Shown here: positions 37,311-60,250 of the stretch, one piece after another
Layout: the number at the start of each line of letters is the position of its first letter
Position numbering within the stretch: position 1 is the first letter of the stretch
Source of the DNA: Mytilus californianus
Lineage: Eukaryota
Reading direction: 5' to 3'
Length of the DNA: 64,000 nucleotides
Assembly (NCBI RefSeq): GCF_021869535.1
Contig: NW_026262690.1
Location: forward strand, 11,842,001 to 11,906,000
The notes under the pieces: generated by a model
Databases searched by the model: none
What the model was told of the DNA's origin: nothing
Seen by the model: only the letters and a program-made list of their open reading frames with translations
Position numbers and translations under genes: made by a program

Positions 37311-37874
37311 AATTTTGCATGTTATAGTGGATATTTTTGTAATAATAGCGAGTTTTATCGGTTTTTTTTTATTATTATTGGCTATTTCACATGTTTGAAA
37401 CAAAAATGATTACATTCTATTTGTCAAATTTTGTTTTATAAATATAGTATGATTTCATCTGTTTTACTACATAATTTTACAAAGGTTTGTTCGCAAATTC
37501 CTATGCGAGAAAATCGTGATGTGCCTAGAGTGCTAGAAATATTTCGATAACATACTTATTATATATACTTTATATATGCCTTTTGGTCGGGTTGTTGTCT
37601 CTTTGACACGTTCCCCATTTCCATTTTCAATTTTATTAGAACTAATTTTGAATATGTCTTATTTTGTATAAACAGATAATATTCATATGCCTGGTAATAT
37701 AAAGATCTTTAAAGGTAGAAGTGTTATATTTGTATTTTGTTAACCAATTAATTGTGATCTGAGATTTATCAATGCATCGTTGGTCACGATAACATGGTTA
37801 TTTAAACTCACTTACAATACCTTCTAATTGAGAAAAGGCTTTAATTTTGAAAAGAAATTAACATAATAGTTTAA

Positions 37875-37983
37875 GTTATAGATACAATGGATAAGCGTAG
37901 ATTCATGAAAAACAAACCATTCGCCCTCCGGGCTCATGGTTTCTTTTTCAAGAATCCACGCTTATCCATTGTATCTATATAAC
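37875..37983. repeat. Foldback palindrome (~46-bp arms)
   Basis: GTTATAGATACAATGGATAAGCGT...ACGCTTATCCATTGTATCTATATAAC with apical TCGCCCTCCGGGCTC. Confidence 0.8.
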
Positions 37984-38307
37984 GTATTATTCACCCAGTT
38001 GTCCAGCATATACTAGCGACACGACCTTACCTTACGATTTTAAGAACGTGGCTTAAGTTTACTCTATGTATATTTTAATGCTAAAGTTACATGACAAAAA
38101 AAATGGGCATGCGTCAAATGATATGGTAGGGTAAACGAACAGTCCTCGAAAATGGGATATAATTGATGGATAACGCATTATTTTTCCTGAAAACTGTCAT
38201 TTATTTCATTCCTGAATACTTTAATGTTTATCTGAACTGAAAATCAGTGAACAAACTTTGATGTAAACATTATGTTTTACTGAGCTTAGCTCCGTGCAGA
38301 TTTTGTA

Positions 38308-39424
38308 ATGAGTGAAAACAATATGGCGTCCCCCACAAATGTAAACAAGGACTTGCCAGATGAAAGCCAAGATGATATTTTGGTAACCTGCTCTCAACCA
38401 GGTCTTACAATAACCACTCAAGAGTCTATTTGTAACAAGAGACCCCATCCAGACAGCCCCGATACCCTCCCAGCGACACTTAAACAGCGGACAAGACAAC
38501 TCCGAAGGCGAGGCAATTCGTTAGGTGATCTTACTGATTTAGATATTCCCAAAAAAGCGGCTTCACTTAGAAAGTCTGTTGCTGATAGAGTCCTGGAGGC
38601 CCTAAGCAGTCCAGAGGTCATAAACACTATTATGCCTATTTTGTCAAAACAAATAAGTGAAACCTTGGTGCCAATTATACAAACGGAGGTCAAAAAATGT
38701 GTTATGGACGAAATGGAACCACTTTTACACAAAATCGACAGTCAGAATAAAACAATTGAAAAACAACAGCAACAAATCACCATACAATTTATCCAACTTT
38801 CAGCCTTACAAAGCACCACTAAAGATCAAGTAACATCAAACAAAGAACGAGACAACGATGTCAACTTCCTTCATAATAGAACTAGAGAACAGACTTGAAA
38901 TTCAAGAACAGTACTCTAGAAGGACAAGTCTTCGTTTCAATAATATCCCTATTCCTGTAGACCGACTCAGTGGAGGTAAAATTGTACATCCTGTCGATAC
39001 TGACAAAATCATATTGGATACATGTAAAAACAAACTCAAACTTGATATTGGTATCCAAGACATAGGAAGATCACATGTCATTGGCAAAGTCAAACAAGGA
39101 AAGTCTCAAGTGATTGTACGATTCATTTCCTACAGAACTAGACAACTAGTATACTCAAACAAAAAGGCTCTAAAAGGTGATCCAAATGGTACCTTCATTA
39201 CAGAAAATTTGACCCAATTTAGGACAAACCTCGTCAAAAAATTAGCCGCTCTAAAATTTAACAATAAAATCAATACATACTGGACCATGGACGGTCGAAT
39301 CTTTGTCAAACTGACTGCAAACAGTAATAAACGAATAATCAACGATCTCCAAGATATTTCTGATCTTGAGGCAGCAATCCGTCAAGGTGAAGACAGCACA
39401 AACTCAAACAACTCTGGAGACTAG
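38308..39424 (+). pseudogene. LINE ORF1 (coiled coil plus L1 transposase-22-like RRM/CTD), one frameshift near 38880
   Basis: ORFs 38308-38898 and 38858-39424; motifs LENRLEIQEQYSRRTSLRFNNIP, IGRSHVIG, VIVRF, FITENLT, WTMDGRIFVK. Confidence 0.85.
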
Positions 39425-40283
39425 AGTTCAGGATCTCATCAACTTTTCAAAACTTTAATAAACTCACTTCTTATTTGTTTCGCATTGTTTCACGTTTCCT
39501 AATAAGTATCATATGTGCTAATCAAGGTGTTGCCAATTACAAATAGAGTATTCATGTCAAAAAAAATCCTAATTAAATAAAAAATAATGAACGAAAGTGA
39601 TCACACTATATAACACATCTCTATGAATAAAGTAAATTAGCGTTTTCCTTTACTATGAAAATTGACACTTATTCACTCTTAATTATGAAGAAGACTTAAG
39701 TTAACTCTTCTATTTAATAAACAGCAGCTGGTACACTTATGTGATTGATTTTTGATAAGCAATAATAATTCGGACGAAGCATATCATAGTATGCGTTTAT
39801 AGTTTGGAGCCCATCTCTTTCTTGTTTTGTTTTTCTGCTTAACATGCAAATTTTCCCTTTAACTCCATCCCTCGTCATCTTCTTCCTTTATACGCAATAA
39901 CATACATTCGTTGAAAACTGCTAACAGGGTTATTGTCCTGTTTAATAACCTTATGAAAATAGATCAGTTATTACTTATTATGACTTTCAACATGGTATTC
40001 AAGTTTCTTATTTGTATTATTAATGGCTATCTTTATATGGTAAAATTCATGCTAAAAGTAAGGCGCTGGCTCGCCGTTTACAGTTTTATAAAAAAAAATC
40101 AAATCAAACATTTATGTACGTAACAAGTACATATATTAAAATTACCAAATCAGTAATAAGTACAGGACATAATCGAATCTTATAAATGTTAACTCCTTAT
40201 TTTCTATTATTTTTCCGTCCAATCTTCTTTTATTTATAGTTCATATACAACCAGTACAATTGTCAACAGCATGTAATATATTA

Positions 40284-41779
40284 GGGGACAACCATTTGAT
40301 ATTCTGGGGGGGGCAGGAGGATTTTGAAAATAAATAACTCAGCCTTGATAATCACAAAAATAAATGGTTTGTTCTGTGGTAGTTCGAAAATAAATAACCT
40401 GACTTACAATGTATTGAAAATGAATAACTCGGCAGGTCTTTAAGCCATTTTATAAATGCTATTCGACAGTATGAGGTGGCACGAAGATTCTTCATAAAAT
40501 TCCTCTTTTTTTCAAAAAAAATTCGGGAAACACTTCCCAAATCTTTTAATAATAAAAGTATAAATATTATTTAAATATACTTGAAATGTCTGAAAATGGG
40601 TTTCATTTAACTTGAGATATATTGGCTCAGGAACACTTACCTCACTTTTATTACAGGGCTGTAACTACATTGAGGCAAATGCCTTTATGAAGGAAATATT
40701 AAAACCAAAAGCTTGTCTTCATATCAAACTATTTTCACAGCAAGTGTTTGCAAGAAGCAAGTTCTGTTCTCCCTTGGACGTAGCACCTGTTTTTTTCGGG
40801 ATCAATGTTTTTTTAAATTTGTCTTTTGTTCATTGATTGCCCTTCTGTATTTTCTTAGTGTTGCATTCCTTTTGTGATTTAGTAATTTTGTTTTCAACTT
40901 GATCATGAGTTTTATTTTATTTAAGACTTTTTAGCTAATTTTACAACTTAACTACTTTAAATTGTATCCCAGTTAAGAGCTACATCAAGTTATAATTGAA
41001 ATGTGTTATTAAAAATTACTTGACATAGTTATATCACTGATAATCAGCCCCCTCCTAACTTAATTTGAATAAAACCCCATATAATTTACAGGTATAAAAG
41101 ATTTAAATTCTGCATGCCGAAAAAAAAAAAACAAAAACAAAAACAAAAACAAAAAAAAACCAGCAGCCACATACTTAACTATGTGAATTACATTTTTACT
41201 TTATTCTTCATATTGGTCTTTTGATGTTGTCCATAAAAACTTAAATCTATACATTTTGCTTTAAGACCAAAATATTGTCAAAAAATTATTAAAACAGAAC
41301 TTGCGATTTCAGAATAAGAAAGGGTCTGGGGACGCCCAGAAAGCACGATTTTGCAACATTTGTTCTATAGTTTCTTTGGGCCTTCAGCGGCTTCAAAACC
41401 CTTCAAAATTTGTTTGCCTCGCTCCGCTCGGCGTAAATATATTTGGCAATACTTTTAAAAGAGGCTAGTCACAGCCCAACTCTAATACCATGTATTTATG
41501 CATACATGTATATGCAGTTTGGGATTCAGAAGATTCATTTCCGCAGAGGATGATGATTAATTCTGATTAAATGGTACATTAATGACTTGACTGTACATGT
41601 ATTGTTTATAATAAAAAATGAATTCAATAATTGTATGTTTTCAAATATTATTAATATAGTTATAAATAATCAGTCCCTTGTTTTAATGAAAATGAAAAAT
41701 CTTGCTTCAACAGTGCAGAAAATAAATAATCTGTCCTCTTAGTTTACAAAAATAAATAACCGATCCAAAACAAATCCTC

Positions 41780-41817
<38 letters not shown>

Positions 41818-41839
41818 AGAATATCAAATGGTCGTCCCC
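40284..41839. mobile_element. PIF/Harbinger-type MITE
   Basis: TTA TSD (40281-40283, 41840-41842); TIR GGGGACAACCATTTGATATTCTGGGG..CAGGAGGA; periodic AAAATAAATAA subterminal motifs. Confidence 0.85.
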
Positions 41840-42499
41840 TTAGTGTACACTGTAGAAATCCAGTAAATACTCTTACCGAACTCTACACAAATGATCAATT
41901 TAAATACCTATCGACGGATAGCTCACCATAGCAGTGTATCAGTATTTAATAAATGCATAATTTGAGAATGAATAAAAAAAAAACAAAGCGTAAAGAATAG
42001 CTGTAATGCAAGATGAAATTTGTCTATTATTATATGAGCCATTTGCCTTGACCTTTTGTATTGTATTCCTGTTCGGTTGTCAATGTATTTATGTTTATTG
42101 TGTATGCTGTGGTAATTTGTACTTTCATGTTTATTGTCTTTGCTGTTTTTTTGTAATGTTTGATTTAGATGTAAAACCAATAGCATATATGGAAGTTTGG
42201 GCTAATACTGCTAACAACAATGATAGCTATAAAACTACAAAAAATAATGATAGATTTTAAAGAAACGTCTATATCCCATTCCTCTGGCTAATTAAATATG
42301 TGTTCTGGCTACCAAACTTGTAATTTAAAACTTGTTTACTTCCAGGTCTAATAGTTTGAACTTTATCGTGTACAGCTTTCTCATTGGCATTCATACTTAG
42401 TGCCTTATTTAATATCAATACAGTTTCAATTTAATTTTTTTTGTCTAGTTTTTCCCTGTAAGTATAATACTAAATTTTTTCAATATAACAGAATCCCAT

Positions 42500-42613
42500 T
42501 TTCATTCAACGATCATGACTTCCATGTATGTCAAACTTACTTCTCATGCTTTTATACTGTTCAAATTATTTTTTGAATCTTTTTGTTTTTTTTTATTTTG
42601 TTGTGTTTTCCTG

Positions 42614-42646
<33 letters not shown>

Positions 42647-45600
42647 GTGTGCCGGTTTGGTAATGCTTCCCTACAACAGTCCTTTCTTATCCCCTGTTAC
42701 GGCTGTTTCAGTCAATGGGTAACAGCGTTCAAGATTACAGGGCTGCTGTAGGTATATTTAATAATCGAAGAAAATACTGTAAACCTTTAGCACGTATAAA
42801 AATGGATTCCTATTCAGATATACTTTTTACTAACTTACGCTGCAGTTTCCTCGTCTTCAATCTCTCGGTTTTACAAACAGTAAGTCCAAGATCAGACATT
42901 ATTTTTCTGTTGTATGTACTTCATTTTATCCTCCTAATTGGAAATGTTGAAACAAACCCAGATCCAAATCTTCGTAACGAATCGAATACACCGTCATTTA
43001 ACGACACAAATACATCAGAAAATTTTATTTCCATTTGTAGTCTGAACATTAGATCCGTCAGAAATAAACTAGCATTTCTAGATAATTTTTGTGACGAATT
43101 TGATATTGTAACATTAACAGAAACGCACTTAGATCCCAACATCGCTGATGACAACATACAACTAGACTCTTTCTCTTCAAATATCGTAAGAAAAGATAGA
43201 AATAGCTTTGGTGGTGGTTTACTTATCTATGTTAAAGATGGTATTGGACTTAAACGCATTGATGCACTCGAAACAATAGACGATGAATCCCTTTTTGTAA
43301 ATATCCATGTTAGAGGCCAAACATTTTTATTATGTCACACTTATCGATCGCCTAATTCAGATAATAACTACTGGACACGTTTAAATCATGCAATCGGAAT
43401 GGGATTACAGGTCAATGAGAGGATGGTTATTACGGGCGATTTGAACTCTGACTTACTTACAGCGCACAACAACAAACTGATTGACACATTAAATTTGTTC
43501 AATCTAACCAATGTAATTAAGCTACCTACTAGAATAACGGACCATAGTAGCACTCTGCTAGATCCGATTATAATAAGTGACTCTATGACATGTTCCTTTT
43601 CTAGTGTTCTAAAAACCCCATCCGATATTAGTGATCATGATGCACCTATTGCATTTCTCGAATGTCCAATGTCCTATTTTAAATCTTTTAAAAGAGAAAT
43701 ATGGCTCTATGATAGGGCTGATAAATCAAAATTTGCGGAGAAATTAGATGAAATAGACTGGAACACAGTGCTTCCGGACACTAAAAACACCAACGAGTTG
43801 TGTGAAATATTTACAATCAATAGAATTTTTGAAAATAACCAAAGAGTGTATCCCTACTAAGCTAATAACTGTAAGACATAACGACAAACACTGGTTCACT
43901 AACGATATAAGACGAGAAATTCGAATTCGAGACCGATTAAGAAAAAAGGCAGTTAAATCCAAGACTGAAAATGACATTTTGAGGTACAAGCAACAGAGAA
44001 ATAAAGTAAATAATATGAAAAAAATAGCCAAAGAAAAGTTTGAAACAAATTTGGACAGTATTATACTAGAAAACTCCCCGAACTCAAAAACGTATTGGAA
44101 ACTTATGAAAATGTTGATTAAATCAAATAAAAATTCGGACAACATACCCCCTCTCCAAAATATTATAAATGATAATGGACTAAACGATGTCGTATATGAA
44201 GATGAGGATAAATGCAGCTTATTAAACAAATATTTTAGTATGATTTCAAAACTTGATGAAGAACATGTAAATTTACCCGAATTTAAAACAAAAACTGATA
44301 GTAAATTTTCGGAAATCAAAATAAATACACAAGAAATCATAGATATTATCCAGATATTAGATCCAAACAAGGCATCAGGCCCAGATGTGATCAGCCATAA
44401 AATGCTTAAGTTATGTCCGGAAAAGGTTGCAGTTCCGCTAAACATTATATTCAATAAATCTTTAAGAGAAGGCAAATATCCAACCAGTTGGAAGATAGCT
44501 AATTTAATACCTATTTTCAAAAAGGGGGATTCATCCTTGCCTTCAAATTACAGACCAATTTCTCTTATTAGTTGTGTTGGAAAAGTAATGGAAAGAGTTG
44601 TTTTTAAGCACTTGTATAATCATCTACACGCTAACAAATTAATTTATGAATATCAATCCGGATTTCTTCCCCAAAATTCAACTGTCCATCAACTTTTAGA
44701 AATATACAACTGCATCTTAAACGCTTTGGAAAAAAAAGAAATAAACTGTTTTGTATTCTGTGATTTCTCTAAAGCGTTTGACAAAGTTTGGCATAGAGGT
44801 CTTATTCACAAACTGAAAGCCTATGGTATTGATGGAACCTTATTACAGTGGTTTGAAGATTATCTGCATGACAGGAAACAAAGAGTAGTACTGAATAATT
44901 CGTCCTCCTCTTTTTGTAATGTGTCAGCAGGTGTACCCCAGGGATCTGTTTTGGGCCCTCTTCTCTTTGTTTTATATATTAATGATATTGCTGATAAGCT
45001 TACATCGCTGTGTAGGCTATTTGCAGACGACACTTCATTCAGTTATTCCGGTAGCGATGGTGCACAGATTAAATCTGTGATCGACCGCGACCTGAAAGAG
45101 CTGGACGTTTGGTCAACTAAATGGCTTATGTCATTTAATCCTGATAAAACAGAAATTATGATATTTTCAAATATTGAGATACCAGATCTCAACTTTTCCC
45201 TAAATGATAAAACTATCCTTATAAATACATCGCATAAGCACCTGGGAGTTACCTTTAGTTGTGACGCAAAATGGAACAATCATATTGAAAGTATAATTAC
45301 AAGTGTAAAGAAACACCTTAATGTTCTGCGTAAACTTAAATATCGACTGTCTCGTAATAATTTAGAAAAACTTTATCTAGTTTTTATTAGACCCATTTTT
45401 GAATATGCCACGGAAGTGTGGGATAATTGTGGGATATGTTATTCAAATAAATTAGAAAATTTGCAATTGGAAGCCGCAAGAATTGTAACAGGTCTACCAA
45501 TCTTCACTAAAACTGATACTCTGTACTCTGAGGTTGGCTGGGAATCTTTATATGAAAGACGAAGAAGAAGAAAATTACAGATGTTTTATAATATAAATAA

Positions 45601-46488
45601 AAAACATGCACCTCAGTACCTGTGTAATCTTGTCCCCCCATGTATACAAAGTACAACCAACTATCCGTTGCGAAACGGTCAAAATATCATTGTTCCATTT
45701 TGTAGACTTTCCCTTACCACTAAATCTTTTATTCCATCCACAATACGAGAATGGAATAAGCTTGACTTAAAAATTCGAAACACCGACTCTATAGCTAAAT
45801 TTAAGAGAGAATTGAAAAATGAAAGTGTTCAGAGTAGAGTTGCGCCGTATTATATGTACGGTCCGAGAAAACTGAATATTATTTTAACTCAATTGCGATG
45901 TTCCGCTTCATTTTTGAACTCTGACCTTTTCAAAGCTAACATTATACTGGATCCTTCGTGTCAGTGTGGGTCTGATATTGAGGATGTTCATCATTTTCTT
46001 TTAGTTTGCCCAAAATACACTACGTGTAGAGAAATTTTACTTAACAATCTTAATTGGCTTACTGAAAACTTTATTATTGATACTAAACTATTAACTTGCG
46101 GAGATCTTGAACTTTCAAATGAACAAAATCTACTAATTTCCAAACATGTTCAAGATTTTATTAAAAGGTCTAACAGATTTCTAGTACCTTCATAAAATAT
46201 TATTGCTACCGGCACGGATGATCATCACCATCAAACCTAAGTCAACATCACAGAAAATATAATTTGCTTCTTTTTTCTTTTCCTCCTTTTCCATTCTTCT
46301 TGTTCTTTTTTTCTTTTTATTTATAGTTCGTATAATATTTAATGAATTTGTTAGCTTTACATGCATGCTCATAATGTTATTATTGTATATATACTTGTAT
46401 TGTAATATGGAGAAGACTTCATAAGTATGATTTACTTGTGTCTCATCCATTTTGCTGATATTTAGCAAATAAAATATGTTTAAACTAA
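42500..46488 (+). mobile_element. CR1-group non-LTR retrotransposon, ORF2 unit with UTRs (may extend 5' to ~38000 to include ORF1)
   Basis: 3' end with stem-loop TTTGCT-GATATTT-AGCAAA overlapping AATAAA, then ATATGTTTAAACTAAAC; 5' boundary approximate. Confidence 0.85.
42715..46195 (+). pseudogene. CR1-group LINE ORF2 (2A-like leader, APE endonuclease, reverse transcriptase, C-terminal Cys/His motif), single frameshift near 43810
   Basis: NIRS, LTETHL, GGGLLIYV, GDLNSD, SDHD; NYRPISL, DFSKAFDKV, GVPQGSVLGPLLF, FADDT; CQCG..EDVHHFLLVC. Confidence 0.95.
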
Positions 46489-46489
46489 A

Positions 46490-49400
46490 CATGACAGAAT
46501 ATGATTGAATCCAAAGAAAGTGAAAATTTAAATGTTAATAAAGTTCCTACAAAATATGACTACATTTCTAATAAAAGTGGAGATTTAAATGCTAGAGTTT
46601 TTACAGAATATGACTGCATTTCTAACAAAAGTGGAGATTTTAATGCCAAAGTTTCAACAGAATACGACTGCATTTCTAACGAAAGTGAGGATTTTAATGC
46701 CAAAGTTTCTACAGAATACGACTGCATTTCTAACGAAAGAGAAGATTTTAATGCCGAAGTTTCTACAGAATATGACTGCATTTCTAAAGAAAGGGGAGAT
46801 TTTAATGCTAAAGTTTCTACAAAATATGAGTAAATTTCTAATAAGAGTGGAGATTTAAATGCTGGAAATTCTACAAAAAATTTTAATGTTAATAAAGTTT
46901 CTACAGAATATGACTACATTTCTAATGAAAGATGAGATTTGAATGCTGGAGTTTCTTTCTACAGAATATGACCGAATTTCTAACGAAAGAAAGTAGAGAT
47001 TTAAATACTAGAGTTTCTAGAATATGACTTCATTTCTAAAGAAAGTGGAGATTTTAATGCCAAAGTTACTACAGAATATGACTGCATTTCCAACAAAAGG
47101 GGAGATTTTTATGCCAAAGTTTCTAAAGAATATGACTGCATTTCACAAGAAAGAAAGTGGGGATTTTAATGCTAAAGTTTCTAAAGAATACGACTGCATT
47201 TCTATTGAAAGAGGAGATTTTAATGCCAAAGTTTCTACAGAAAACGACTGCCTTTCTAACGAAAGTGGAGATATAAATGCCAAAGTTTCTACAGAATATG
47301 GCTGCATTTCTAACGAAAGTGGAGATTTTAATGCTAAAGTTACTACAGAATATGACTGCATTTCCAACAAAAAGGAAGATTTTAATGCCAAAGTTTCTAC
47401 AGAATATAGCTGCATTTCTAACGAAAGTGAGTGGAAATTTTAATGCTAGAGTTTCTACAAAATATGACTTCATTTTTAACGAAAGTGGAAATTTTATTGC
47501 CAAAGTTACTACAGAATATGACTGCATTTTCAACAAAAGGGGAGATTTTTATGCCAAAGTTTCTACAGCATATGACTGCATTTCCAAAGAAAGAAAGTGG
47601 AGATTTTAATGCTAGAGTTTCTAAAGAATGCATTTCTAACGAAAGAGGAGATTTTAATGCCAAAGTTTCTACAGAATACGACTGCATTTCTAACGAAAGT
47701 GAAGATTTTAATGCCAAAGTTTCTACAGAATACGACTGCATTTCTAACGAAAGAGAAGATTTTTAATGCCGAAGTTTCTACAGAATATGACTGCATTTCG
47801 AATGAAAGGGGAGATTTTAATGCTAAAGTTTCTACAGAATATGAGTAAATTTCTAATAAGAGTGGAGATTTTAATGCTGGAAATTCTACAGAAAATTTTA
47901 ATGTTAATAAAGTTTCTACAGAATATGACTACATTTCTATTGAAAGATGAGATTTGAATGCTGGAGTTTCTTTCTACAGAATATGACCGAATTTCTAACG
48001 AAAGAAAGTGGAGATTTTAATACTAGAGTTTCCAGAATATGATTTCATTTCTAACGAAACGATGGAGATTTTAATGCCAAAGTTACTACAGAATATGACT
48101 GCATTTCCAACAAAAGGGGAGATTTTTATGCCAAAGTTTCTACAGAATATAACTGCATTTCCAGAGAAAGAAAGTGGAGATTTTAATGCTAGAGTTTCTA
48201 AAGAATACGACTGCATTTCTAACGAAAGAGGAGATTTTAATGCCAAAGTTTCTACAGAATACGACTGCCTTTCTAACGAAAGTGGAGATATAAATGCCAA
48301 AGTTTCTACAGAATATGGCTGCATTTCAAACGAAAGTGGAGATTTTAATGCCAAAGTTACTACAGAATATGACTGCATTTCCAACAAAAGGGAAGATTTT
48401 AATGCCAAAGTTTCTACAGAATATGACTGCATTTCCAATATAAGAAAGTGGAGATTTTAATGCTAGATTTTCTAAAGAATACGACTGCATTTCTAACAAA
48501 AGAGGAGATTTTAATGCCAAAGTTTCTACAGAATACGACTGCCTTTCTAACGAAAGTGGAGATATAAATGCCAAAGTTTCTACAGAATATGGCTGCACTT
48601 CTAAGGAAAGTGAGTGGAAATTTTAATGCTAGAGTTTCTACAAAATATGACTTCATTTCTAACGAAAGTGGAAATTTTAATGCCAAAGTTACTACAGAAT
48701 ATGACTGCATTTTCAACAAAAGGGAAGATTTTAATGCCAAAGTTTCTACGGAATATCACTGCATTTCCAATGAAAGAAAGTGGAGATTTTTATGCTAAAG
48801 TTTCTAAAGAATACGACTGCATTTCTATTGAAAGAGGAGATTTTAATGCCAAAGTTTCTACAGAAAACGACTGCCTTTCTAACGAAAGTGGAGATATAAA
48901 TGCCAAAGTTTCTACAGAATATGGCTGCATTTCTAACGAAAGTGGAGATTTTAATGCTAAAGTTACTACAGAATATGACTGCATTTCCAACAAAAAGGAA
49001 GATTTTAATGCCAAAGTTTCTACAGAATATAGCTGCATTTCTAACGAAAGTGAGTGGAAATTTTAATGCTAGAGTTTCTACAAAATATGACTTCATTTTT
49101 AACGAAAGTGGAAATTTTATTGCCAAAGTTACTACAGAATATGACTGCATTTTCAACAAAAGGGGAGATTTTTATGCCAAAGTTTCTACAGCATATGACT
49201 GCATTTCCAAAGAAAGAAAGTGGAGATTTTAATGCTAGAGTTTCTAAAGAATGCATTTCTAACGAAAGAGGAGATTTTAATGCCAAAGTTTCTACAGAAT
49301 ACGACTGCATTTCTAACGAAAGTGAAGATTTTAATGCCAAAGTTTCTACAGAATACGACTGCATTTCTAACGAAAGAGAAGATTTTTAATGCCGAAGTTT

Positions 49401-57844: not shown

Positions 57845-60250
57845 ATATATATATTTTATTGTGAAGCTACCCCTTCACAACGGGGGCAAGCGCAGCGGGG
57901 TACTGACACCTGCGTCATAAAAAAACATATCATAGTATTTACAAATAGCATTATATGATTGTAATAAAAATGGTACAAGATACTTGCAAATATTTAAAAG
58001 TCTATAAATACATTAACGCTAAAATAACATAATACATTGGTTATTTTGTAAAAGTACATAATAGTAACAAAGTCATATTCATATATTATTGGAGATCTTT
58101 CGTCCATAAAAGATTAAAAATTTCAATCTTGAAACTAAAAACGTTCGCACACAGTTCAAGATATTAAACATTTGAAATTTTATCAAGTACAAAAGAACGT
58201 TCATTCATAACGTCTGCAAGGTATTTTTTTCACGATCTTATCTAAACTATTACCTAAGTCTGGAGAATACAAGTAACCCAGATCACCTATCAAGCACTGT
58301 ATTTGTGCTAAGGGCGGCAACTCTGAAACACAGATATCCATTTTTAAACTATCGAAATATGCTTGTATATCAGTACTTGTTCTTTTTCTGATAGCCGAGA
58401 AAGAATGACAATCTAACATAACGTGAAAAATATTCTCGGTTGAATTTGAGGAACATAACTGACACTCATTGTTTGTTATAAGATTCATTCGTTGAAGCGT
58501 GGCAGTATAGGCAGACAATTCGTTCTTGCCAAAAATTTTAGCCTTGTTGAGCGGAAGTCGTCAACGTTTGATAGATACGGCTGCTTACGTTTAACAACCA
58601 CAAGGGATTGGTACAAGTTTAAACTACTCTTTCCTAAAATATTGGATAGTTGAGTATTGGTCGTTTCGTTACCATAAAGTTTATCAAAGATATTAACGTT
58701 TATGTTTCCATTTGCATAATGGTCAAGACCCGCAGTCTGTAGAATAGTTTCAATATTTTCTATATATTTCCGTTCATTACATTTAACAGGTATAATTTCA
58801 TTTAACGTCAGCCGAATAGCCGACATCCACAGAGAATGTCCAAAATCTATACGATTAAAATCCCCATGTTCACCTAAAATACGAATTGCATGATTTATTT
58901 TCCGTTGAAAATTTTCTTTCAGGTACTGCTCTATATGGTATGTAGATTTAAGGGATCTTGAAAAATATACGCCTAAATATTTATATTCATTAACTTCTTC
59001 AATGAGATAATTCCCTAGGTACCATTTTTTATCTGAGTCTTTCTTTTTACCTGTAACCAGAACCTTCGACTTTGATGAATAAACTTTAAGCTCCATTTTG
59101 AGACAAATTTATGAGCTATGTTTAAAAGAATTTGTAGCTCATCTTCCGTGTTTCCTAACAGGACAATGTCATCAGCGAAAAGAAGACAGTGAATTAATTC
59201 AGAAGCGATGCTTATACCCAAATTTGCCTCCTTCAGCATATCGCATAGGTCAGTCAGTCGGAAAAAAAGTGTAGGAGATAAAATGCATCCTTGTTTAAGA
59301 CCAAATTTTTGATCGAACCAATCAGACTCGTAATTACCAAAAAGGACTTTATTGCTAAAATTCTTATATAGTGCCCGTAGAATCTTCCAGCATTTACCCT
59401 GGATACCCTTTTTCCAGAGAACAGTCCATCCCGCCAAACTTTATCGAAAGCCGATGAAAGATCAAGGAAGGCAAGAAAAGTCTTTTCCTTCCTGGACTTT
59501 TTCATCGAACAAATTCCGTTCAGTATGAAAATGTGATCCTTCACCCTCCTGTCTTTTCGAAATGCACCTTGAGTTTCACCAAGTATCCCTTTATCTTCAA
59601 TATAACCAATCAGATTGCATTCAATTAGCTTACAGTATACCTTGTATACATTTGATGTGAGAGTTATACCTCTATAGTTACTCAGAGAGTGTGTAGACTA
59701 ACCTTTGTGTACGGGTATAATGATTCCTTTATGCCATTCATCTGGAATTGTTTCTAGATCTGTAATTTTTGTAAAAATATGAACAAGGGAGTTCAACAGA
59801 ATGTCCCCACCATATTTAAGGAATTCGTTAGGAATGCCATCAGTATCACAGGTTTTTCCAGATTTGAGACTTTTCAAAGTCTGTGAAATTTTATTTTCGT
59901 CGAAAGTAACCGATTGGGGAGAATCTGATATTAATAAATTTTCGTCAATATTTGTAATAAGGTTTTTAACATCTTTTTCAAGTTCACCATTTTCATTTTG
60001 AAAGGAACTTATGGAGCTAAAATGCTTGGAAAGGGCATTATATATCTCACCCGTAGCCGTTAATATTTTATCCGAATCATGTGGATACTTGCTAAATACA
60101 GACAAAAACAACAGACAATGCAAGACAAAGTATTATAATAATGACCACTTAAGGCTATATTCAGCAGATGTGGGCAAATGGTTTCAAAGATGAAAATTCT
60201 GGAAATTCCTAAGATAGCAAATATACATATGTAATGCACCGTCACGTTAA
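57845..60250 (-). mobile_element. 5'-truncated RTE-X/L2-group LINE remnant
   Basis: Frameshifted ORFs: DGIPNEFLKYGG, FLDLSSAFDKVWR, GLKQGCILSPTLF, LLFADDIVL, YKYLGV, CQLC..ENIFHVMLDC; 3' stem-loop, AATAAA and (TA)n tail; clade call tentative. Confidence 0.8.

Follow-up and report, generated by a model that had tools for sequence, protein, structure and literature searches.

The element and its copies

The window analysed here, a stretch of 64,000 nucleotides of the Mytilus californianus genome (contig NW_026262690.1, positions 11,842,001 to 11,906,000), contains a full-length copy of a two-ORF LINE whose ORF2 encodes an apurinic-type (APE) endonuclease followed by a reverse transcriptase (RT; Table 1). 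The element is an APE-type non-LTR retrotransposon not only by its domains but also because many 5'-truncated copies share one 3' end; we find at least 1,277 candidate 3' ends against about 17-27 hits for the segment upstream of ORF2, with variable 5' ends. Three copies start at 41959-42023, which may mark the start of a shorter RNA. The first-pass annotation of this locus wrote of CR1. Named relatives carry only 'uncharacterized' or 'transposon BS'-type labels and an ESM Atlas look-up of the RT returned only generic RT clusters with no clade name, and we use no clade name here. A 64-aa poly-Asp ORF (42528-42722) that lies over the 5' arm described below was rejected as coding, because T-run lengths shift its frame among copies.

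The 2A-like motif of ORF2 is real but is already known for such elements (PMC3708506). It lies at aa 76-84 and satisfies the description of a D(V/I)ExNPGP motif 40-80 aa from the ORF2 N-terminus, after a hydrophobic leader. It reads GNVETNPGP in 10 of the other 15 copies read, with close variants (GNIETNPGP, ENVETNPGP) in four more, and is mutated to NPDP in the copy studied here.

Table 1. Features of the LINE copy, in window coordinates
Position	Strand	Feature	Basis
38100..46492	+	Full-length LINE copy, about 6.8 kb without the nested insertion	Other copies begin to match at 38098-38103; more than 1,000 candidate copies stop matching at about 46485-46495; no poly(A) run at the end
38308..39424	+	ORF1, in two frames in this copy (38308-38898 and 38858-39424)	ORF list; 68% aa identity to an ORF lying 1,275 nt upstream of ORF2 in the related element L077; no Pfam family above threshold
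39425..42714	+	ORF1-ORF2 spacer, about 1.74 kb in the family	Other copies join 40290 directly to 41840; no conserved ORF
40283..41840	.	Nested non-autonomous TIR element, private to this copy; not part of the LINE	Absent from all other copies; 38-nt terminal inverted repeats, 89% complementary
42600..42665	+	5' arm of the long-range duplex (predicted): outer helix, helix C, (GAU)n, helix A, extension	Co-folding, partner scans and minimum-energy fold; ends 49 nt before the ORF2 AUG
42666..42714	+	Pyrimidine-rich interval between the 5' arm and the ORF2 AUG	Sequence
42715..46195	+	ORF2 (APE endonuclease and reverse transcriptase), frameshifted near 43800-43860 in this copy	Pfam PF03372 (1.4e-8) and PF00078 (2.6e-37); ORFs 42715-43860 and 43802-46195
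42940..42966	+	2A-like motif, GNVETNPDP here and GNVETNPGP in most other copies read	Translation of 16 copies
46201..46263	+	3' arm of the long-range duplex (predicted)	Co-folding, partner scans and minimum-energy fold; starts 5 nt after the ORF2 stop codon
46264..46492	+	Rest of the 3'UTR: pyrimidine tract, then a highly conserved terminal ~90 nt	Alignment of 14 copies; 46400-46492 nearly unchanged even in copies whose UTRs are 22-26% diverged

Complementarity around ORF2

The first-pass annotation had described five antiparallel, collinear helices, A to E, flanking ORF2, and had proposed that they form an RNA panhandle between the 5'UTR and the 3'UTR. The observation itself is confirmed, and all of the sequences it named lie where it placed them. 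Two points had been set beforehand as tests, and both came out in favour of the pairing. First, co-folding 42500-42715 with 46195-46488 gains -41.3 kcal/mol over the two separate folds, whereas 200 dinucleotide shuffles give -8.9±3.7 (z -8.7) and none reaches the observed value. Second, the upstream arm is present in every copy that reaches that far, about 17. In addition, when a 67-nt 5' arm was scanned against 6,394 windows of the + strand across the 64 kb, the 3' arm was its best partner (-60.7, against -42.0 for the next unrelated site; mean -19.5, sd 4.8), and the reverse scan was reciprocal (-60.0 against -32.7). The minimum-energy fold of the 4,093-nt RNA 42400-46492 also contains pairs 42600-42665 x 46201-46263.

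The duplex is longer than was first described. It consists of an outer A/U-G/U helix (42600-10/46253-63), helix C (42611-18/46246-53), (GAU)n at 42615-44 against AUCAUCACCAUCA, helix A (42648-56/46208-16) and an extension (42659-65/46201-07). Only helices A, B and C of the original five hold up. Helix D exists in the main family but its 5' arm is deleted in the diverged copies, and the TCAAACTTA arm of helix E is private to this copy (1 of 14), so neither is a conserved feature. We note that part of the energy comes from a trinucleotide repeat whose length varies among copies from 7 to about 240 units. The 5' arm is, moreover, not in the 5'UTR; it lies in the ORF1-ORF2 spacer, about 2.9 kb from the 5' end of the element in family coordinates, once the nested transposon is discounted, while the 3' arm lies about 230 nt from the 3' end. 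The arrangement thus encloses ORF2 rather than the whole RNA and is not end-to-end cyclisation of the viral or Ty1 type. Nor is it a terminal-inverted-repeat DNA transposon or foldback element around ORF2, since both arms are internal to the LINE unit and homology among copies continues 4.5 kb upstream and 230 nt downstream of them.

Conservation in subfamilies and related families

Copies were compared one by one. L058 and L059, copies whose UTRs are 22-26% diverged, keep reciprocal best pairing, whereas L061, a degraded copy that lacks the 5' arm of helix A and the whole 3' half, is uninformative. Helix A is GUGCCGGU/ACCGGCAC in the main family (12 5' arms and 25 3' arms; ACCGGCAC is found in 25 of 25 main-family 3' ends read). 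From the copies read and from two counts of matches to supplied patterns, helix A is the compensated GUGUCAGU/ACUGACAC in one subfamily of the same genome (3 and 28 copies) and GUGUCGGU/ACUGGCAC, with two G·U pairs, in another (its own 5' arm plus one main-family-like copy, and 4 copies). A neutral simulation gives P(at most 1 broken pair) of 0.003-0.015 and P(at least 2 double compensations) of about 0.006, although one of the two compensated pairs lies in a CpG on both arms, where parallel decay gives a compensated outcome half the time.

Five further families with 64-72% ORF2 identity, including Mytilus edulis, have a duplex of different sequence at the same position. RNAduplex applied to whole segments (200 x 120 nt) was too noisy, giving z of only -2 to -4 for distant families, and we therefore used 40 x 40-nt windows. 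In all eight lineages compared in this way the best duplex between the 200 nt before the AUG and the 120 nt after the stop is -26 to -51 kcal/mol (z -4.8 to -15.5), with 0 of 30 shuffles reaching it. The motifs differ: (GAU)n/(AUC)n, UGACGACGU/ACGUCGUCA, GGAUUAUCUC/GAGAUGAUCC with (GU)n/(AC)n, and GUGUGUGUGGAU/AUCCACAUACAC. G/U-rich repeat arms pair promiscuously, so dinucleotide shuffles overstate z for the microsatellite families. Among six families at 45-50% identity (L083 to L088), two or three have such a duplex. It is non-repetitive in L084 (-40.5, z -6.7) and L087 (-45.9, z -10.6), which are at 48-50% aa identity, and L088 is borderline, while L083, L085 and L086 (the last with an unreliable start) show no significant duplex even with 600 x 300-nt windows. 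The interval between the 5' arm and the ORF2 AUG is 42-61 nt in 9 of the 10 clearly positive lineages, the tenth, L087, having about 97 nt; the 3' arm begins within about 25 nt after the ORF2 stop in close relatives and 45-113 nt after it in distant ones. ORF2 is intact (1149-1157 aa) in the related elements L076-L081, and ORF1 plus a long spacer is conserved in L077.

It is possible that none of this reflects function, and that an old inverted duplication plus complementary microsatellites has drifted neutrally, the matches in relatives being shared ancestry or chance. Much of the pairing energy in four lineages is indeed (GAU)n/(AUC)n, which is length-polymorphic and promiscuous, one compensated pair is CpG-linked, three distant families lack a duplex, and only a few independent lineages were read. 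We consider this reading unlikely, however, because the arms differ completely in sequence between families and yet each stays complementary to its own partner at the same place, with the cognate partner beating non-cognate partners wherever the arms are not the shared microsatellite. Repeat type also co-varies between the arms (GAU with AUC, GU with AC, GAC with GUC), the compensated and G·U states are fixed in 28 and 4 copies and so arose in active lineages, and the neutral simulation and the excess of G·U over A·C mismatches both speak against it.

Mismatches in the arm alignments are G·U-type 24 against A·C-type 6, or 19:6 over independent families, where composition predicts a share of 0.52 (p 0.012); this points to the sense RNA. 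A-to-I editing would also leave G·U-type differences, and at 35-50 bp the duplex is long enough for dsRNA-binding proteins. The roughly 50-bp intramolecular dsRNA might be a substrate rather than a regulator, a trigger for Dicer/piRNA-type silencing or for ADAR editing that is kept, or tolerated, by the host-element conflict. We regard this as very unlikely, as an element gains nothing from keeping a silencing trigger across families with intact ORF2, and the fixed distance to the AUG would be unexplained.

Interpretation and comparison with known systems

We favour, with moderate confidence, the reading that the two arms form a selected long-range RNA duplex on the sense transcript that closes ORF2 into a loop of about 3.5 kb. 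What the analysis establishes is the complementarity, its statistical excess, its conservation of position with change of sequence and the bias towards G·U rather than A·C mismatches; transcription and transcript ends, pairing in the RNA of the cell, any function of that pairing and ribosome skipping at the 2A-like motif are inferred from sequence alone. That the duplex is real and selected we think likely, but that it acts on ORF2 translation rather than on another step is a tentative proposal, somewhat short of even odds. ORF2 sits behind ORF1 and a 1.3-1.7 kb spacer and the element has no poly(A) tail, so that neither scanning from the cap nor a cap-poly(A) closed loop could serve ORF2 well. 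In this view the bridge would bring the 3'UTR, and ribosomes terminating at the ORF2 stop, to within a helix width of the ORF2 start, and would set the rate of internal initiation or re-initiation on ORF2, either by delivering factors and 40S subunits or by acting as an on/off gate. Against this, translating ribosomes would melt a helix that starts 5 nt after the stop, a 3.5 kb span is kinetically unfavourable, and nothing here separates a translational role from one in reverse transcription or RNP assembly.

The interpretation offered by the first-pass annotation is partly supported. A long-range pairing enclosing the endonuclease-RT ORF is supported, while its placement of the 5' arm in the 5'UTR, and two of its five helices, are not. 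It had suggested that the RNA circularises either to couple translation of a 2A-bearing ORF2 with cis-priming at the 3' end or to control internal initiation after the long spacer; of the two, the latter better fits the conserved 42-61 nt between the 5' arm and the AUG, the 3' terminus lying about 230 nt beyond the duplex.

Alternatively, the duplex may be real and selected but serve replication. It could mark or compact the template for ORF1p/ORF2p binding (cis-preference), or could pace or guide the reverse transcriptase, which would meet the 3' arm about 230 nt after initiation, as Ty1 CYC5-CYC3 pairing assists reverse transcription (PMC7969010, PMC3592414). The same conservation evidence applies, and in close relatives the 3' arm lies directly after the stop, where nascent ORF2p is released. 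We nevertheless think this unlikely, since the distance from the 5' arm to the AUG is better conserved than that to the RNA 3' end or to the stop (0-113 nt), the conserved terminal ~90 nt, the likelier RT recognition site, lies outside the duplex, and no ORF2-deleted derivatives joined at the helix base appeared among the roughly 20 copies holding the 5' arm.

How LINEs translate ORF2 from a bicistronic RNA is a long-standing question (PMC3708506, PMC3894237), and a conserved RNA bridge placed a fixed distance before the ORF2 start gives a concrete element that can be mutated and tested, with natural compensatory series (C-G, U·G, U-A) as ready-made experimental controls. Our literature searches, confined to a single library, found no described LINE panhandle, and such a bridge would extend long-range RNA cyclisation from RNA viruses and Ty1 to non-LTR retrotransposons. 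ORF2-flanking complementarity could also become a diagnostic feature for annotating this bivalve LINE clade. A more far-reaching possibility, which we consider doubtful but not excluded, is that a whole clade of bivalve two-ORF, 2A-bearing LINEs carries an ORF2-closing duplex fixed in position but free in sequence, as the LINE counterpart of viral genome cyclisation. It would replace the cap-poly(A) closed loop and make ORF2 an autonomous translation unit, with internal entry and hand-over of terminating ribosomes from the ORF2 stop to the ORF2 start, which would explain how ORF2 is made behind a kilobase-long spacer.

Among known systems, the 2A-bearing non-LTR elements surveyed in 2013 (PMC3708506) share the APE and RT domains and a 2A motif in the 40-80 aa zone, including in molluscs, but most of them lack ORF1, which this family and L077 keep, and no RNA bridge was described there. 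In the silkworm LINE SART1, RNA structure controls ORF2 initiation on a bicistronic RNA by termination-reinitiation (summarised in PMC3708506), but SART1 needs an overlapping UAAUG stop-start and a local downstream structure, whereas here the ORF1 stop and the ORF2 AUG are about 1.74 kb apart (1,275 nt in L077), which does not fit termination-reinitiation of the SART1/calicivirus type, and the predicted structure spans ORF2. In uncapped, non-polyadenylated plant RNA viruses with 3' cap-independent translation elements (tombusvirus/luteovirus type), long-distance pairing between the 3'UTR and 5'UTR substitutes for the cap-poly(A) closed loop and delivers the translation machinery to a start region; the bridge proposed here would be analogous, although the viral contacts are usually 5-8 nt loop-loop kisses next to a structured factor-binding element, and no such element has been identified in this 3'UTR. 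The general principle of long-range viral RNA interactions has been described (PMC2648310). Ty1, a yeast LTR retrotransposon, is a retroelement whose RNA pairs its 5' and 3' regions over kilobases with a role in its own replication (PMC7969010, PMC3592414), but Ty1 pairs short (about 7-nt) sequences near the true RNA ends and acts in reverse transcription inside particles, whereas here 35-60 nt arms flank only ORF2 inside a bicistronic non-LTR element that uses target-primed reverse transcription. In flavivirus genome cyclisation (5'-3' CS/UAR panhandle), long-range, collinear, covarying helices bring the region near a start codon to the 3'UTR, as the predicted duplex would here (PMC7999817, PMC5101012); the viral arms, however, sit at the genome termini and serve an RNA-dependent RNA polymerase, whereas the 5' arm of the LINE is internal, behind ORF1 and a 1.7 kb spacer.

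Structure of the element and of the predicted duplex

The complementary arms lie within a full-length LINE copy (see table). Its 5' end is set by four other copies that begin to match at 38098-38103, and its 3' end by more than 1,000 candidate copies that stop matching at about 46485-46495; the copies end in ...AAACTAAA without a poly(A) run. Both ORFs are frameshifted here, ORF2 near 43800-43860. ORF2 carries an APE endonuclease (PF03372) and a reverse transcriptase (PF00078). Other copies join 40290 directly to 41840, and the 1.56 kb between them, which contains long C/G runs and is bounded by 38-nt terminal inverted repeats (89% complementary), is absent from every other copy of the LINE and is probably a non-autonomous DNA transposon. 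The ORF1-ORF2 spacer of the family is therefore about 1.74 kb. A 2A-like motif at aa 76-84 of ORF2 reads GNVETNPGP in 10 of the other 15 copies read, with close variants in four more, and NPDP in this copy; such motifs at the ORF2 N-terminus of mollusc non-LTR elements have already been described (PMC3708506).

Coordinates of the LINE copy, its parts and neighbouring features
Feature	Position	Strand	Remarks
Abundant repeat of ~385 nt	window 37600-37990		1,533 candidates, copies 98-99% identical; contains an internal ~115-nt inverted repeat; ends about 110 nt before the LINE's 5' end
Full-length LINE copy	window 38100-46492	+
ORF1	window 38308-39424
Nested element with terminal inverted repeats	window 40283-41840		in the LINE spacer
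Stretch in which three independent copies begin	window 41959-42023		about 700 nt before the ORF2 AUG
5' arm of the duplex	window 42600-42665		ends 49 nt before the ORF2 AUG
Pyrimidine-rich interval	window 42666-42714
ORF2	window 42715-46195
Conserved ORF2 N-terminal motif	window 42715-42765		also at L084:2001 and L087:1934
3' arm of the duplex	window 46201-46263		begins 5 nt after the ORF2 stop
Tandem array	window 46540-48200 and beyond		54-nt unit, 31 or more copies, 73% matches, 166- and 274-nt higher-order periods; begins about 50 nt after the LINE's 3' end
Fragment of a different reverse transcriptase	window 59422-59841	-	31% aa identity to this ORF2; another LINE family
Copy with expanded (GAT)n (L016/L018)	G000 C68:3058012-3059077
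Copy with deleted helix A and start codon (L017/L023)	G000 C132:119212909-119213114		deletion corresponds to window 42625-42725

The complementarity described in the first-pass annotation is real, and every string quoted there is at the quoted place. Co-folding 42500-42715 with 46195-46488 lowers the energy by 41.3 kcal/mol relative to the two separate folds, whereas dinucleotide shuffles give 8.9±3.7 (z -8.7) and 0 of 200 reach the observed value. As a control that keeps real sequence context, we scanned each 67-nt arm against every window of the 64 kb + strand and found that the arms are reciprocal best partners (-60.7 against -42.0 for the next unrelated site, and -60.0 against -32.7). The minimum-energy fold of the 4,093-nt RNA 42400-46492 also contains the duplex. 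It has a layered build, consisting of an outer A/U-G/U helix, helix C (CUGUGAUG/CAUCACAG), a (GAU)n run facing AUCAUCACCAUCA, helix A (U-GUGCCGGU/ACCGGCAC-G) and a 7-bp extension (GGUAAUG/UAUUGCU).

The interpretation offered in that annotation, of an RNA panhandle made by 5'UTR-3'UTR pairing through five helices, is supported only in part. The upstream arm lies in the inter-ORF spacer and not in the 5'UTR, the 5' arm of helix D is deleted in diverged copies, and the TCAAACTTA arm of helix E is a private substitution of this copy.

Variation of the arms among copies in the genome

The upstream arm is part of the element, as all copies that reach that far carry it. Among them the (GAU)n run varies from 7 to 21 units, and in one copy on contig C68 (L016/L018), in which helix A also carries a C-to-U change (GUGUCGGU), it has grown to about 700 bp. 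The repeat length is therefore not constrained, and the flanking clamps A and C are the informative parts. In a further copy (L017/L023) a deletion from inside the (GAT)n run to just past the ORF2 AUG removes helix A together with the start codon.

Two diverged copies, L058 and L059, hold both arms; they are 70-82% identical in DNA, with the UTR segments 22-26% diverged. In each, the arms are again reciprocal best partners within the 9 kb locus, with pairing gains of -41.9 (z -6.6) and -59.5 kcal/mol (z -15.1), respectively. Helix A reads GUGCCGGU/ACCGGCAC in the main family, GUGUCGGU/ACUGGCAC, with two G·U pairs, in L059, and GUGUCAGU/ACUGACAC, with both pairs compensated, in L058. Pattern counts show that these are lineage states rather than private decay: in the diverged 3'UTR context ACUGACAC occurs in 28 copies, ACUGGCAC in 4 and the main-family form in none, while among 5' arms GUGCCGGU occurs 12 times, GUGUCAGU 3 times and GUGUCGGU twice. 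The main-family 3' arm is ACCGGCAC in 25 of 25 copies.

A neutral simulation that placed the observed number of substitutions on helices C, A and the extension gave P(at most one broken pair) of 0.003-0.015 and P(two double compensations) of about 0.006. We note, however, that one of the two compensated pairs is a CpG on both arms, and that one change in L058 (C to A in the extension) breaks a pair. A copy at 94% identity (L062) has GAUGGUGAU facing AUCACCAUC, which repairs the single A·C mismatch noted in the first-pass annotation.

Predicted duplexes in related families

A protein search with the RT piece found two groups of relatives, one of 64-72% identity on metagenome and Logan contigs and in Mytilus edulis, and one of 45-50% identity in Pinctada, Mizuhopecten and other bivalve-derived assemblies. 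Eleven contigs were retrieved for ten of these proteins; those from metagenome assemblies are presumably bivalve DNA. For each lineage we took the best 40 x 40-nt duplex between the 200 nt before the ORF2 AUG and the 120 nt after the stop and compared it with dinucleotide shuffles.

In the close group, all eight lineages (the window copy, L058, L059 and the lineages L076, L078, L080, L081 and L082) give -26 to -51 kcal/mol, z -4.8 to -15.5, and none of 30 shuffles reaches the observed value in any of them. The 5' arm ends 42-58 nt before the AUG and the 3' arm starts between -3 and +14 nt after the stop; in L078 a clamp starts about 22 nt after the stop. The sequences differ by family: (GAU)n/(AUC)n with a different clamp (GGGU-U-ACAC/GUGUACCC) in L078, (GAU)3GUGUG/CACAC(AUC)3 in M. 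edulis, UGACGACGU/ACGUCGUCA in L076, GGAUUAUCUC/GAGAUGAUCC plus (GU)n/(AC)n in L080, and GUGUGUGUGGAU/AUCCACAUACAC in L081. The type of simple repeat thus co-varies between the two arms. It is possible that the arms are no more than a neutral inverted duplication, but this fits poorly with arms that change sequence yet stay matched, and we consider it unlikely.

The distant group is less uniform. L084 has a non-repetitive 35-bp duplex rich in G·U pairs (-40.5, z -6.7), 61 nt before the AUG and 45 nt after the stop. L087 has a 34-bp duplex (-45.9, z -10.6) that lies 55 nt after the stop and ends about 97 nt before the likely AUG, which we placed at L087:1934 by the conserved MG....YRAxxGxF start. 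This N-terminal motif, MG....YRAA(I/V)G.F, precedes the hydrophobic leader and the 2A motif and is kept even at 48-50% overall identity. L088 is borderline, and L083, L085 and L086 show no significant duplex, even with 600 x 300 nt windows.

In a cross-matrix the cognate 3' segment is the best partner wherever the arms are not the shared microsatellite (L076, L080, L084 and L087), whereas the (GAU)n families cross-pair, as expected. L077, a related element, carries an ORF1 homologue (68% aa) 1,275 nt upstream of ORF2, so the two-ORF, long-spacer layout is conserved too. ORF2 is intact (1149-1157 aa) on L076-L081, so these are young elements. The number of independent lineages behind these comparisons is nevertheless small.

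To ask which molecule is constrained, we aligned each 5' arm with the reverse complement of its 3' arm under symmetric scoring. Transition mismatches are G·U-type 24 times and A·C-type 6 times, or 19:6 leaving out the two same-genome subfamilies, whereas base composition predicts a G·U share of 0.52 (p 0.012). On the antisense strand or in duplex DNA these would be mismatches, which points to the sense RNA as the constrained molecule. As L084 contributes 9 of the G·U cases, the test is suggestive and not strong.

Possible roles and relation to known systems

On the evidence of sequence alone, we take the analysis to have shown a selected, position-fixed duplex that encloses ORF2; what the duplex does is inferred. 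The steadier constraint is the 42-61 nt between the 5' arm and the AUG, as the distance from the stop varies from 0 to 113 nt. ORF2 lies behind ORF1 and a 1.3-1.7 kb spacer, and the RNA has no poly(A) tail. We therefore tentatively favour a role in ORF2 translation, in which the bridge would bring the 3'UTR and terminating ribosomes next to the ORF2 start and would either promote internal or repeated initiation or gate it. The pyrimidine tract about 19 nt before the AUG resembles the Yn-Xm-AUG border of picornavirus entry sites, although this is a lead only. We also note that three independent copies (L004, L016/L018 and L058) begin within the same 65-nt stretch of the spacer, which could reflect chance 5' truncation or the start of a shorter ORF2-only RNA. 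The main rival, which we rank lower and think unlikely, is a role in template recognition or reverse transcription, as with CYC5-CYC3 of Ty1 (PMC7969010). Nor can we exclude that the duplex serves as a dsRNA substrate, although we regard this as very unlikely.

Our literature searches found no description of an ORF2-flanking duplex in any non-LTR element, and a survey of bivalve LINEs does not mention UTR structure. By contrast, 2A-bearing APE-type LINEs are already known (PMC3708506, PMC3894237), as is long-range RNA pairing in flaviviruses (PMC7999817), in plant RNA viruses (PMC2648310) and in Ty1.
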